Assembly (NCBI GenBank): GCA_000708835.1 | Contig: DF236977.1 | Coordinates: forward strand, 284,623 to 348,622 | DNA from: Klebsormidium nitens | Taxonomy: Eukaryota > Plantae > Klebsormidiophyceae | Length of the DNA: 64,000 bases | Direction: 5' to 3' | Part shown: in pieces, positions 1,833 through 7,668 of the stretch | Layout of the letters: the number at the start of each line of letters is the position of its first letter | Numbering within the stretch: position 1 is the stretch's first letter | Made by a program: the position numbers and the translations under genes | The notes under the pieces: generated by a model | Database searches by the model: none | What the model was told of the DNA's origin: nothing | Seen by the model: only the letters and a program-made list of their open reading frames with translations

Positions 1833-3436
1833 GCAGGCTGCTTACTTGACGTCCGAGTTGCAGCATGTTTCTATGTCAAGGGTAAGCAAAGTAGTGACGT
1901 TGAACGAGCTTTCGTCGAGCCGAGAAAAGCCTGGCCCCTCCGCTTCTTCCTCCTGCCTGCGCAGGGCTACAAAAGCCTGAACCAGTTGTGTGGGAGAGAA
2001 CTTCTTTGACAATTCTGTTGAGTGGAAGTCTTGTTCTCGAGCATCCAAACGTGGCGCAAAGGTGCGAAGCGACGACAGTCCTGACAGGCTCACTGCCAAG
2101 CTAGGGGCAAGCCGCAAGCTGCAAGACAGAATCAGAAGATCGGATACTCCACCCCCACATGTGAGCCGGAGCTGGCCGCCTTGCTACCGTCATGAGTGCA
2201 TGCACTCATTCTGTCTGTTTTCAGTCGCGTGCTCCGTTTGCGAACGGTCCTGAATATCGTCAGTGGGCGGTGCTGAGCTGGCTGAGTTGCATGGCAACTT
2301 CCGCTCTCTTTTGCGACATTGGACGGTGGACGTCTTTGCCATGTGGCGTATTGCATGTGGCCGCGTCATATGTCAACTCGAGAACTGCTTCTTGAAAGCT
2401 CTAAAGACTTCACGTGATAACTTCAAGACCGTTCGCTCATGATTGGAGATCATTAATATCGTTCGAACAGCACTGGAAATGACGCCACGCATGATTGAGC
2501 GGGCTTGCCCGAGCTCCACGTAGCAAGTTATAGGTTTGTACTCGATCGACTTTCAAGACCGCGAATCGATTTTGATCGATCTGAGCGCCGATCGGCATTC
2601 GACTTGGGCAGGCCCGAGCTGACAGCTAGACTCGCAGCCTGAGGGCCTAGCTGAGCAGCATGAGCCGCCCCTAAGACACCTATGGCTTCAGCAGGGCTCG
2701 TCAATGGCGGCCGTCGGGTAGGGGTCAACGGGTATCTTGTGACTCTGGTCCGATGCACCAACTACCTACCAGCTGCTCGTGGTAGTAGGCGTGTGTAGAA
2801 GCGACATGAGCATCAAACCGATTAAGTATGAAAAGCATAAGAACGTAGCATGTGACATGCGAAGGTTGAAGAGAATTACCATCATTGAGTAGCATTATAG
2901 ATCGCTTTGAATCAATTCAAGTGTCAACAAGAGAGCAAGAGGGGCGGCACATAATCTGAGAGCTCAACCAGAGGAAACGAGTTGTAGATTGTTAGCCTTA
3001 AATTAGCTCGCAATGCCAAGAAGAGCTCCACCAGTGACGAGGGGGCCCGAGCAGGGTGTTACTTCGAATCAGAAATTTGCTCACTAGTTTACAATATATC
3101 ACCCCTTTTGCCGGTGCATCAGATCTTGAAGGTGGGCTCAGATGTATTACTTGATTGACAAATCAGAGATGCATACGTGAACCCAGTTCTGTTAATTGGA
3201 ACTATAGTATGCGTTCTTTTGCAGTGTAAAAGAACGCAAGGTTTTCGTTCGTGCGTTGATGCACATCCCATATGCATTAAGCCGGTATTAACACAAGAAG
3301 TGCGGGTACAAAAAATGGACAACAACGCCATGTACGGAGCGAAGTGGTGCAGCATCCAACGCGTTCTTTGGGATCGAACCGCAAAAGAAAAGTTGCAATA
3401 AGCAAAAGTTTGACGCAAAACATCTGGATTTCGGCG

Positions 3437-6355
3437 TCACGCCGAAACACGAAGTTTATGCAGAAGTTGTTGCAGATGCTCGTCCTCCGGGTTGACAAGG
3501 AGCAAAGCAGCATAATCCGCAGCTGCTGCTTCCGGCTTTCCAATGAGCACCAAGCTGTCTGCTCTTTGGCGGCAAGCTTTTGTGCACGAAGAATCAAGCT
3601 CGAGCGCCATGGTGCACGCCTGGACAGCTGGTTCATGCCTGCAAGCCGGATAGGAAAGTTAGGGGGAGGGAGTTCACGGACGAGTTTTTAACCGATACGC
3701 GCAGGACCTCAGGTTCCAACATGAAACCCATGAATGCACAAGGTTGCAAAATGTGTTGGTTGCTGCTTCTTCGGGTACATTCGCTAGATAAGATTGAAAA
3801 GATTGTATCCAATAGAGGCAGTCAATTTCTAAGATCCTAAGTGGCCTCGAAGAGCAAAAGAGTCTCTTGTAACATTGCATGCGAGACTGCGGCTGCACAG
3901 TCCTTTTAATATCGATGCACAATCCTTTTAACATCGACAGGCTGTGGTAGCGGCCCACCTTCCGAGTGCTGCAAGCGCCATGCCCTTGTTGCAGTGCAGA
4001 GTCGCACACTCGTTAAGCACTCTGAGCCCGCTCTCATACGCTCGCAACGCCCCAGCAAAGTTGCGCTTCCGGTACAGCTCGTTTCCCCGCGCGCGGTGGC
4101 GGGCCCCCAGCTTCAGCCGCGCTAGCTCCTCGACAATGCCATCCACCTCTGGCAGCTCGGTACGCCCCGCATCCCCAGCGGCTTGGCCTGTTCCCACACA
4201 CTCTGCGGCCTGCTCGAGGCTCACCTCTGCCGCGTCGAGCTCACCCAAGACCACCTGGGCGCGGGCCTGCAGCAAGCAGACAAAGAGAGGACCAGCTCAC
4301 AATCCGTCGGGCAACTTCTCCAAAGGTTGTCGTATAGAAACCAAGTAGAGTGCAAGGTCTGGCAGATAAGTAGGACCAGAATTCGACGACTGCAACTGCC
4401 CGAACTTTGAGAAAATGACAACCGAGTTCAACGTGCTCAATATCCTGTCAATGGAAGTCTGATCGTTTTCGTCTTGTTGTTCTCAGGATTTGGCTACTGG
4501 AGTGTGTTTCACACTCGTCCATGGAAGCATCCCTAGTAGCTGCCAGGCCTGTAGTGACATACAAAGGCTTTTAGGTCAACAAAAAGCTCCTCCATATGCA
4601 AAGTGGCAGCTCCAGGAAGAAATTCGGAAAACCGACAGTTTGCTAACTCTTCTCACTCTTCGAAGCAACGCGTCAGCCTGGCAAGAGCCCGACCGACTCA
4701 GTAGCTCGACTGGTGGCCCCGCGCCTCCGGGCCCCCGTTCCACTTGCTGTACCGACTCCCGCTCACCGCTAGAGGCCCTCCCTGGCTGTGGTAGTCTGCC
4801 GTTTGTTGATGACTCTGCCTGCTCGGCCCGAGTTGTGCTCGTTGATCGGACGTCCTCCTGATCAGACTGAACTTGAGCGCTCCCAAGTCCCTCCCGCTGC
4901 TGAGCCTCTACAGGCTCTGCCGTACTGTCACCTCTTTGATCTACCTCTGGCTCTTCCCCTCTCCCTTCCGTTGATCCCGGGCCTGTTGCTACAGTCACAC
5001 CCTTGTGCTGACCGGCCTTCTGCCTCTTCTGCGCCTCTGCAGCCAACGTCAACAGATCCGGGAAAAGGTTGCGCAGCACGGGCCGTTCCTGGATGTACTG
5101 CAGAGACGAGGCAGCGATCTGGTGCTTTTCGACCTCCTGCACAATAAAACACGCATAACCAAGCTGGTCAGGTAATCAAGGGTGAGGCTTCAGAGCATTT
5201 GTGAACATGTGGGGAATCCCATCGACCAGACTAAGGACTGTGGTGCGAGAAAGCACCATAACATCGCAACATCGTGTTTGCCCTGCTGTGCTCACAGTGA
5301 TATTACACTTTTGCTTCTTGTTGCTTGGAGGGCGAGTCTTACTGAGGTCTCAATGGAGCCCGTCGTCGCAGTGTCCTCCAACATAAAAGACAGCAGCCCG
5401 GTGCAAACTGTGCTCACGGACCACATTGGGTTCCACAGCTCTGCACAAAGACATGGGGGTTTGGCACCTTGCGCATGGACGAAGCGTAGGATGTGTTGGG
5501 GACGATGTGGGGCAAAGCAAAGAGAGCAAGTACCAGTGGATTTTGACTTTCAAAAGCAGCTCTTCTTGGAAGAGTAGGTTTGAAAGTGAGTAGGCATAAG
5601 GCCCCCGAATTTCGATAGCAAGACTTTTCAGTCCAAGTGCCTTAATAGCATGACGGCAGTGGGGCTGCAAATCACCTGGGTGGAAGTCAGACATGGAGAG
5701 GCAGAGACGTGTGCTGGTCTTGAACCTGCCCGTGGGGGTCACCACCGAGATGGCAGGTGGGGCAAACGGGTAGTCAGGCTCAAAGCGTAACTTTCCAATG
5801 TACCTGTGCAGACAAGCATGGAAAAGTTCCGACACTGTTTTTGGATGCTGAAGCCACCTTAGACTGCAATCAGGATTTGAAGGGGGCGCAGCTCCTGATG
5901 TTGATTCTGGACTCTGATTTGCTTGAGCAGCCCCCAATGGCCTCTGAGAGAGGAGATGAGATTGAGGTATGTGCTTCTTACCAGCCTCCGTCGTATGGGG
6001 TTTGCGGTGGCCCTTCGACAAGGAAGTGCCATGTCAGCATGTCGCTCTCATTTACCGCAATCTGAAGAATCAAGAGAGCACAAAAGAAGTAAGAACACAG
6101 GCCCTGATCACAAACACACAACAAAGCAGAAGCTGATGGCTTGCCACAATCAAACTTCATTTCATTGTTGCTCTGATCTTGCTGAGATCAGCTCGACCTA
6201 CCAAACTCCATCAGAAAGTGCAGTACAGATTCGATGAGTCAAATCAGCAATCAAAAAGAGGACTGCACCCGCACCGCTGGAATGTATGGCGGCGGCTCCT
6301 TCATAAATGCAGTCATCTCCTTCTTCAGGCGCACTAAACAGCCCTTTCTGGCCAT
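3437..6355 (-). CDS. Ubc6/UBE2J-type ubiquitin-conjugating enzyme (E2) fused to C-terminal TPR repeats, ~458 aa, 7 exons
   Basis: Exons 6355-6275, 6061-5982, 5803-5676, 5440-5343, 5136-4657, 4266-3959, 3638-3437; all GT-AG and phase-compatible (1377 nt). E2 part: MARKGCLVRLKKE..PPPY..WHFLVEGPPQTPYDGGWYIGKLRFEPDYPFAPPAI..TPTGRFKTSTRLCLSMSDFHPELWNPMWSVSTVCTGLLSFM, which is the Ubc6 signature with the catalytic Cys intact. TPR part: ADALLRR|ARAQVVLGELDAA, RARGNELYRKRNFAGALRAY, LHCNKGMALAALGRHEPAVQAC, TKACRQRADSLVLIG. Confidence 0.85.
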
Positions 6356-7668
6356 TTTGAACTGTTGTTTTAGAACGCTAGCTTCGAGTCAGATCAGTGA
6401 TGCCAATCTGGGGGTCTGGCTCCGCTTTCTGCCCCTTCAATCGAGCCTTTACTGTCAGTTTGCTGGAAGTGGAACTTGGAAGATTGAAAGACGTTCTTTG
6501 TCTGAACATCTTCTCGGTAACCCGAACGACTTTATGTAACCCAAAGTCGCCCGGAGGCTGACTGAGAACTAGGGACAACAAACCGGTTGAAAAATTCGTC
6601 GAACAGGGTTCCAGCCATTTGGGCTGCACCAGCATTCGGTACTAAATGCTTGGCGCGGTCACCCCGAAGCTGTCTTTTGTCATCACCCGCAGTGAGGCTA
6701 GCAGTAAAGGCGCCGGCATCGGCCGGTGTCGCGCGAATTTAATTCAAGATCGAATGTCGCGCGCGGCCGCGTCGGCGGCGAACAACTAGCCGTGCGAGGA
6801 AAAAACAGAAGGCAGCTGGGGGCCTGACGAACGACCGTAACGCTAGTGCAGGCCCAAGAAGAGCTGGATGGAGGGCTACGACGCGAGTCCGATAGAGCAG
6901 GGAGTATGGGAAGCCGAAGGCGACTGGGCTGAGGCGAGCAGGTAAGTTGAAAGAATTTTGAAGTATACAAGGGTGGGCCAGGGTGGGAAGCGCAAAATTC
7001 TTCCTAAGCGGGCGCCATGGCGCCCTTCGAAAGCTCTTCCGAAAATGCACAGGACCACTGCGGGGTCTCATGCATTTTTGTGCCGAAAGTTCGGTAGTTC
7101 GCAACCGTCCGATTCGAGGTATCGTAATCGGACCAATCAAAAAGTTGTCCACTATCTCGGTGACTGAGGCCTGCGAAGACCTGCTCAAGAGTCTGCTGTT
7201 CTCAGAGGACCTCGACCTACGGCTAACCCAAATCCTTCCAGCACTTGTTCCTGTTCCCCTCTCACAAGCCAGGTTGAAAATGCCCATCGACGGCATTGCA
7301 TCGCCATTGGCCCACTGGCATTGAGGGCATCAATTGGCATTCGACCATTGTGAGTGCTCCAATTTCAAAGGAAGCAACCATGCTTCGTTATTGCATCGAC
7401 TCTTTGTGAGATGTCGGTCTCCGCAACGGCAGTGCGCCCATTCTTGTCCAGCACCCCCGATTGTCAAGTCAGCGCCTGCCGTCGCTGGGGATCCTTCATC
7501 GGCACCGTAATCTGTAAAACCCGCTGGAATCCACCACTTCCTTTACTGACTAGCTACATTCAATCGGGGCTGAACTTTCGGAGTGCTGCACCGCGAGCTG
7601 GTCCATTGACACAGCATCATCCGTGGGCCTGCAAAGTCCCATGCCAGCAGAGCAGGTTTATATGCAGC

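Follow-up and report, generated by a model that had tools for sequence, protein, structure and literature searches.

Within a 64,000-nucleotide (nt) stretch of Klebsormidium nitens DNA (the window; contig DF236977.1, positions 284,623 to 348,622 of the forward strand), we analyzed the minus-strand locus between window positions 6355 and 3437, which an initial annotation had described as a ubiquitin-conjugating enzyme (E2) of the Ubc6/UBE2J type with tetratricopeptide repeats (TPRs) in place of its membrane anchor. Our results show that the locus is a single expressed gene, read as one transcript, for a soluble E2 of the J2 (Ubc6/UBE2J2) class. Sequence comparison and predicted structures suggest that this E2 may dock on Hsp70/Hsp90 through a clamp-type TPR domain and ubiquitinate chaperone clients in a CHIP-like manner, a reading to which we assign a probability of about one in two. 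The E2-TPR architecture is already present, unnamed, in public databases and represents a J2 E2 with a new targeting module.

An independent count yielded seven minus-strand exons between 6355 and 3437, with a coding sequence of 1377 nt, a product of 458 amino acids (aa) and phases that agree, at the same coordinates as those of the initial annotation. All introns are bounded by GT..AG and are 178-390 nt long. The model was searched exon by exon, and full-length work was done on the public record P0001, a 458-aa protein named 'ubiquitin-conjugating enzyme [Klebsormidium nitens]' in NCBI and UniRef that equals the seven-exon model exactly. P0001 contains all exon translations in order, with split codons at W54, E97 and R392, and was returned by a HMMER search with exon 6 at 100% identity over residues 290-391. 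At least 30% of the sampled words of positions 3300-6500 are present in 20 public runs from seven studies, which fits spliced RNA.

The RNA evidence consists of assembled contigs of four runs from four studies, compared over positions 2800-6900; contig depth, a poor measure of abundance, was used only for the existence of forms and the likely main form. All six junctions were found in 4 of 4 runs as CT..AC skips (GT..AG on the minus strand), including 4657/4266 and 3959/3638, the two that the initial annotation had singled out for a check by spliced reads. Exons 1-5 and the 5' untranslated region (UTR) lie together on one contig of about 1000-1100 nt, and another of about 600 nt, present in every run, joins exon 6, exon 7 and the 3' UTR. 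The exon 5/6 junction (4657/4266) lies on a short unitig with 29 nt on its shorter side, at depths of 137.6, 52, 22.7 and 59.3 in the four runs, so that the single-molecule link between the E2 and TPR exons rests on this unitig together with the public gene model and the orthologues. A contig retaining intron 5 (4237-4685, 449 nt) was likewise present in 4 of 4 runs, at depths of 28, 10.8, 9.7 and 13.4; pieces of the other introns were seen at a depth of about 2-5. Read-through of the retained intron would add 26 residues before a stop at 4578-4576 and yield a 315-aa E2 and linker without the TPR part. The spliced exon 5/6 form exists and looks like the main form, and the retained-intron form also exists. 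The latter could be a regulated TPR-less isoform or reflect slow splicing, and its occurrence in four runs means that a TPR-less product may also be made.

These data also bear on whether the fusion is an artefact of the gene model, in which an E2 gene ending at the stop at 4576 was wrongly joined to a separate TPR gene. Such a reading could draw on the intron-5-retaining contig found in all four runs and on the shortness of the bridging unitig. However, the 4657/4266 junction occurs in four runs of four studies and is deeper than the retained form, and exon 6 starts in mid-helix and lacks a start codon context. In addition, the motif that the initial annotation saw rebuilt across the exon 5/6 intron is continuous in the orthologues: the hairpin consensus LLxLKAxAxxxxGDLDAA is uninterrupted in 13/13 aligned fused proteins, several of them from transcriptome assemblies marked complete, with G297 invariant, which independently supports the splice. 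The E2 cores of the fused proteins also form a clade of their own, as described below. We regard an artefact as extremely improbable, in agreement with the earlier view of one gene and not two neighbours.

A Pfam scan of P0001 detected UQ_con over residues 9-119 (8.2e-18) and TPR_1 (4.5e-13); exon by exon, exons 2 and 3 matched UQ_con, exons 6 and 7 matched TPR families, and the exon 5 linker had no match. Among solved E2s, exon 3 best matched yeast Ubc6 (9en5; E value 8.5e-15) and human UBE2J2 (2f4w; 2.2e-13), with the other E2s at E > 0.03. Both alignments are gapless, so the three-residue insertion after the catalytic Cys is present. The J2 family is defined by a GRF loop replacing the HPN loop, this three-residue insertion, Ser89 together with the general-base His94, and a Thr-flap of T121/T122 in Ubc6 numbering (Swarnkar et al. 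2024, PMC11649903). The insertion, Ser89/His94 and the Thr-flap underlie the reactivity of J2 enzymes toward serine, and the Thr-flap is specific to J2 as against J1 (PMC11649903). In P0001 the signature is complete (G79-R80-F81, C88, S90, D93, F94, H95 and T122/T123), and in the 13-sequence alignment R80, F81, C88, S90, D93, F94, H95, T122 and G124 are invariant, with G79 and T123 conserved in at least 90% of the sequences. The position of Ubc6 E119 is T120 in P0001, and this residue is likewise not conserved in UBE2J2 (PMC11649903). Judged by this signature, the E2 part is of J2 type with a predicted intact active site, as the initial annotation had concluded from the Ubc6-like catalytic region; the best matches are Ubc6 and UBE2J2, and Cys88 is invariant. 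The Thr in 'TPTGRF' was also considered as a lost catalytic Asn of an HPN motif; this reading was rejected because J2 enzymes carry a GRF loop where an HPN motif would be, and ordinary tail-anchored Ubc6 proteins often have N or S at this position.

J-family E2s are described as having, after the UBC domain, an unstructured linker and then a transmembrane segment, and as acting in endoplasmic reticulum (ER)-associated degradation (PMC11649903). No membrane segment was found in P0001, in which the maximal 19-residue Kyte-Doolittle mean is 1.3 and lies inside a TPR3 helix, bearing out the earlier statement that a hydrophobic C-terminal tail is absent. A C-terminal transmembrane segment is absent from all 13 fused proteins, and the tail-anchored relatives in the same match list nearly all have a 19-residue mean of about 1.5-2.9. 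A hidden tail-anchor exon was ruled out, there being no hydrophobic reading frame downstream of exon 5.

An AlphaFold2 full-length monomer model was built on the 13-sequence family alignment, and the C-terminal 203 residues were also folded alone. The UBC fold was modelled to about residue 171, with a predicted local distance difference test score (pLDDT) of about 85-94 outside the loop of the active site, and that loop itself (residues 80-94) was poorly modelled. Residues 174-279 are predicted to be disordered (pLDDT 31-48) and would form a linker of about 105 residues between the UBC fold and the TPR part, rich in G, S, E and Q and with a net charge of -7. A TPR-like hairpin of helices 282-296 and 299-314 follows, spanning the exon 5/6 junction (…LLRR/ARAQ…), and is succeeded in the predicted model by three TPRs and a capping helix (330-355, 359-372, 377-389, 393-406, 411-423, 427-440 and 445-457). 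Of the 'about 4' TPRs that had been proposed, three canonical repeats with a capping helix were recovered, and the first unit is a TPR-like hairpin only. Folded alone, the C-terminal 203 residues reached a pLDDT of 87.6 and a predicted template modelling score (pTM) of 0.81, and the TPR domain a pLDDT of 93-99.

Exon 7 alone matches RPAP3 (TPR E 2.7e-7), PP5, DNAJC3, FKBP51/52, Cyp40, OM64, TOM70, UNC-45 and SGTA, and exon 6 alone gives weak matches to SPAG1, STI1, Hop and SGTA. The family C-terminal profile matched RPAP3 at 4e-39 over two domains, as well as SPAG1, Hop, SGTA (3e-22), PP5 (2e-19), TOM70, SGT2 and OM64; repeat similarity also brings up OGT and designed consensus TPRs in this search. 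In a Foldseek comparison, the top match of the predicted domain was RPAP3 TPR2 with the Hsp90 MEEVD peptide (6fdp; root mean square deviation (rmsd) 1.3 Å over 116 columns, TM-score by target 0.91), followed by OM64, SGT, PP5, RPAP3 TPR1 with peptide, and Sec72 fused to the Ssa1 tail, with rmsd values of 1.3-1.8 Å across RPAP3, OM64, SGT and PP5. By profile and predicted fold, the C-terminal domain is of the dicarboxylate-clamp co-chaperone TPR type.

The canonical clamp is K-N-N-K-R, formed in TPR1 of Hop by K8, N12, N43, K73 and R77. Clamp residues were counted in the 13-sequence alignment of the TPR part, with P0001 among the 13 and 203 query positions (Table 1). Relative to the canonical clamp, the K. 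nitens protein has three identical positions, one conservative exchange (R347) and one loss (Q416); the residues are those that the initial annotation had read, namely R347..G350-N351, C381-N382, K412 and Q416 flanked by R415/R417. Just 4 of the 203 columns of the TPR part are invariant, G297 of the hairpin, N382, K412 and A413, and G350 and N351 are nearly so. Because the clamp positions are conserved across the family, the alignment provides strong evidence for binding of a peptide carboxylate as a selected function of the TPR-fused E2s. Four family records from Trebouxia and Pycnococcus (P0153, P0156, P0162 and P0273) end a few residues past the first helix of TPR3 (…KARRRxxDS…) and comprise about 2.5 TPRs without a capping helix, with all five clamp positions kept.

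The two deviating residues raise the alternative that the K. nitens TPR domain no longer binds a C-terminal peptide and is an appendage with a structural or regulatory role, for instance in regulating the E2 within the same molecule or in dimerisation. Q416 is found in 1/13 sequences, R347 is common to only two others, and the intron-5-retaining form in 4/4 runs would lack the TPR domain. Yet N351, N382 and K412 are retained, Q416 has an Arg on either side (R415 and R417), the domain shows obvious constraint and a pLDDT of 93-99, and the model places no contact between E2 and TPR. Loss of peptide binding is in our view decidedly unlikely.

Several points nevertheless weigh against docking of the K. 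nitens protein on Hsp70/Hsp90. Its clamp is the least canonical of the family, with R347 for K and with Q416, in only 1/13 sequences, for R; Russell et al. in 1999 reportedly found for PP5 that mutating the equivalent Arg abolished Hsp90 binding. The full-length model is without a fixed E2-TPR contact (pTM 0.45) and so has nothing to say on geometry, and in RNA the 4657/4266 bridge is carried solely by the short unitig. Finally, the same clamp in dicarboxylate-clamp TPR domains binds Tom20 (DDVE), Hsp104 (DDLD), Rpn13 and USP19 (PMC6212638). With the same architecture, the clamp TPR could thus dock on a non-chaperone acidic C-terminus, such as that of an E3 ubiquitin ligase, of a proteasome or organelle-surface receptor or of an import receptor, and the TPR domain would be a protein anchor that replaces the membrane tail and places the E2 at a site. 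The second-best structural match, OM64, is indeed an organelle-surface receptor, and the K. nitens protein is off the canonical clamp at two of five positions. However, EEVD tails outnumber all other ligands of dicarboxylate-clamp TPR domains by a wide margin, the great majority of the top matches by profile and by fold bind Hsp70/Hsp90, and no candidate partner was identified. A non-chaperone ligand therefore appears unlikely to us, if still worth serious consideration beside docking on Hsp70/Hsp90.

Table 1. Features of the K. nitens E2-TPR gene in window coordinates. Residue numbers are those of P0001; family counts refer to the 13-sequence alignment of the TPR part.
Feature	Position	Strand	Description
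5' UTR	6356..6591	minus	transcript contigs reach 6489-6591
Exon 1	6275..6355	minus	residues 1-27; ATG 6355-6353; start of UBC fold; junction 6275/6061 in 4 runs
Exon 2	5982..6061	minus	residues 28-53 and 2 nt of W54; UQ_con E 0.0022 from the exon alone
Exon 3	5676..5803	minus	residues 54-97; GRF loop, Cys88 (5703-5701), Ser90, Asp93, Phe94, His95 (5682-5680)
Exon 4	5343..5440	minus	residues 97-129; crossover helix and Thr-flap (T122, T123, G124)
Exon 5	4657..5136	minus	residues 130-289; end of UBC domain (~171), linker 174-279, first hairpin helix (from 282)
Intron 5	4267..4656	minus	390 nt; spliced out in the main form, kept in the minor form
Exon 6	3959..4266	minus	residues 290-392; second half of hairpin (G297), loop, TPR1, first helix of TPR2; TPR_1/TPR_2/TPR_16
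Clamp position 1, R347 (exon 6)	4095-4093	minus	family K 10/13, R 3/13
Clamp position 2, N351 (exon 6)	4083-4081	minus	family N 12/13
Clamp position 3, N382 (exon 6)	3990-3988	minus	family N 13/13
Exon 7	3437..3638	minus	residues 392-458; stop TGA 3439-3437; remainder of TPR2, TPR3, capping helix
Clamp position 4, K412 (exon 7)	3580-3578	minus	family K 13/13
Clamp position 5, Q416 (exon 7)	3568-3566	minus	family R 11/13, K in Mesostigma, Q only in K. nitens
3' UTR	3334..3436	minus	transcript contigs end at 3334-3349

The family was gathered by a word search with P0001, in which the 8000 candidates sharing most words were scored, and by a cluster look-up. Proteins combining UQ_con and TPR were found in the Streptophyta Klebsormidium nitens, Mesostigma viride and Closterium sp. 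NIES-68 and in the Chlorophyta (three Trebouxia strains, [Myrmecia] bisecta, Elliptochloris bilobata, Pycnococcus provasolii and Cymbomonas tetramitiformis), as well as in the transcriptome or metagenome records P0270 (601 aa), P0272 (747 aa), P0183, P0154, P0156 and P0162. In the databases, the fused proteins are named 'hypothetical protein', 'UBC core domain-containing protein' or 'ubiquitin-conjugating enzyme E2 34'. A further family record, P0158 (267 aa), has no linker, probably because of an error in the gene model. The initial annotation knew of no description of this architecture; our literature searches likewise brought up none of an E2-TPR fusion, but in the databases it occurs, unnamed or as 'hypothetical', in at least nine named green-algal genera. 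No land-plant TPR-J2 member was present among the 8000 word-sharing candidates scored, which does not prove its absence.

In a word search with the TPR region of P0001, generic TPR proteins dominated, the best match being a plant TTL-type TPR protein, and no additional fusion came up. Atlas searches gave generic TPR clusters only, with no cluster of at least 50 members carrying UQ_con and TPR. A metagenome scan with exon 6 pointed to two loci: one (L001) is a bacterial TPR protein, and the other matched a generic TPR stretch only. The second structural neighbour of the Atlas model of the protein (TM-score 0.40) is a cluster of 121 giant-virus (Nucleocytoviricota) proteins combining RINGv, a DUF179/AlgH-like domain and UQ_con, which suggests a possible viral E3-E2 fusion.

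A maximum-likelihood tree was calculated from the E2 cores only (52 sequences, 166 columns), leaving out J1 sequences and without inferring the root. All 13 TPR proteins group in a single clade (ultrafast bootstrap 99, Shimodaira-Hasegawa-like approximate likelihood ratio test (SH-aLRT) 83). Its sister group is made up of nine soluble protist E2s whose C-terminal module differs (100/96). Together, these two clades (98/94) stand apart from the tail-anchored Ubc6/UBE2J2 proteins, including P0167 of Closterium and P0251 of Chlorella ohadii. Because the E2-core tree groups the TPR proteins as one clade, the E2-TPR fusion looks like a single old event that produced a paralogue alongside anchored J2 enzymes in the green lineage; in Closterium, the two coexist at the level of the genus. 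The earlier notion of a replaced anchor is accordingly correct in that no anchor is present, but the event is old, the fused E2s are a separate paralogous clade, and anchored J2 enzymes persist in Closterium and Chlorella. The members of the sister clade (P0166, P0168, P0172, P0173, P0178, P0180, P0182, P0185 and P0223, some of them MMETSP records) have neither an anchor nor TPRs. Their C-terminus is instead a module of about 60 aa that lacks a Pfam match and shows the motif LxGLxxxxxLNGxxGxV…GRxxVxL; by its sequence, this unnamed module is a second kind of tail on this E2 branch.

Further observations concern the surroundings of the gene and a close relative. In three runs, loose contig ends were found at 6562, overlapping the 5' UTR of the E2 gene, and the same 30 foreign letters precede this end in two of the three; in run X9, the match of a 1845-nt contig of depth 524 begins at 6751 (region 6751-6900). 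These loose ends and the deep contig point to a highly expressed neighbouring transcript very near or overlapping the 5' end of the E2 gene. In addition, P0002, a 183-aa prediction from a Logan contig of 12.7 kb, shares 85% identity with exon 6 and turns into unrelated residues precisely at the start of intron 6 (…ALAALGR/W); from this break, a close Klebsormidium relative seems to hold the same gene with the same intron position.

Compared with known systems, the K. nitens protein shares with Ubc6, UBE2J2 and Arabidopsis UBC33-34 the UBC fold with GRF loop, the CLSMSD[FY]HP loop with its general-base His, the Thr-flap and the unstructured linker. In contrast to these enzymes, it is without a transmembrane segment, carries a TPR-like hairpin and a clamp-type domain of three TPRs, and has its E2 core in a separate clade, in the company of other soluble protist forms. 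The ER membrane is where known J2 enzymes act, together with ligases of the Doa10/MARCH6 type. CHIP (STUB1) likewise couples a clamp-type domain of three TPRs to a ubiquitin-transfer module, so that both would follow one logic of chaperone-directed ubiquitination; CHIP needs a separate E2, whereas in the K. nitens protein the TPR part is C-terminal, the catalytic part is itself an E2, and homology is limited to the TPR part. As neither a U-box nor a RING was detected in the Pfam scan of P0001, the protein is CHIP-like at most in function and not a CHIP-type member. RPAP3, SPAG1, Hop, SGTA, PP5 and OM64 share the three TPRs with capping helix and, at the family level, the K/R-N-N-K-R clamp, but none of them carries an E2, and K. 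nitens differs by R347 and Q416. The E2/E3 hybrids UBE2O and BIRC6 are similar in that an E2 has a built-in region recruiting substrates or partners; they belong to other E2 families, have other appended domains and are giant proteins.

Under the reading that we favour, the TPR domain would hold on to a free acidic C-terminus, with the EEVD tail of cytosolic Hsp70/Hsp90 as the most probable ligand, and the flexible linker of about 105 residues would bring the charged E2 within reach of clients bound to the chaperone, or of the chaperone machinery. The E2 would then transfer ubiquitin to Lys and, as other J2 enzymes do, to Ser/Thr. A RING E3 may help in this transfer, because binding of RING domains sharpens J2 reactivity (PMC11649903). 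The whole would serve for triage in the manner of CHIP, with an E2 where CHIP has a U-box. Going further, green algae might own a dedicated 'chaperone-docked E2', in which a J2-type enzyme on the EEVD tails of Hsp70/Hsp90 primes cytosolic clients, for example unimported organelle precursors, on Ser/Thr and Lys in parallel to CHIP, and which has apparently been lost in land plants; we put this forward tentatively, as a possibility that is more doubtful than the docking itself.

The E2-TPR family represents a defined case of E2s gaining targeting modules, and its sister protist clade bears a different C-terminal module. If our reading is true, a conserved soluble TPR branch takes the Ser/Thr-directed chemistry of J2 enzymes into the cytosol, and this chemistry would be linked directly to the Hsp70/Hsp90 triage that is otherwise assigned to the E3 CHIP.

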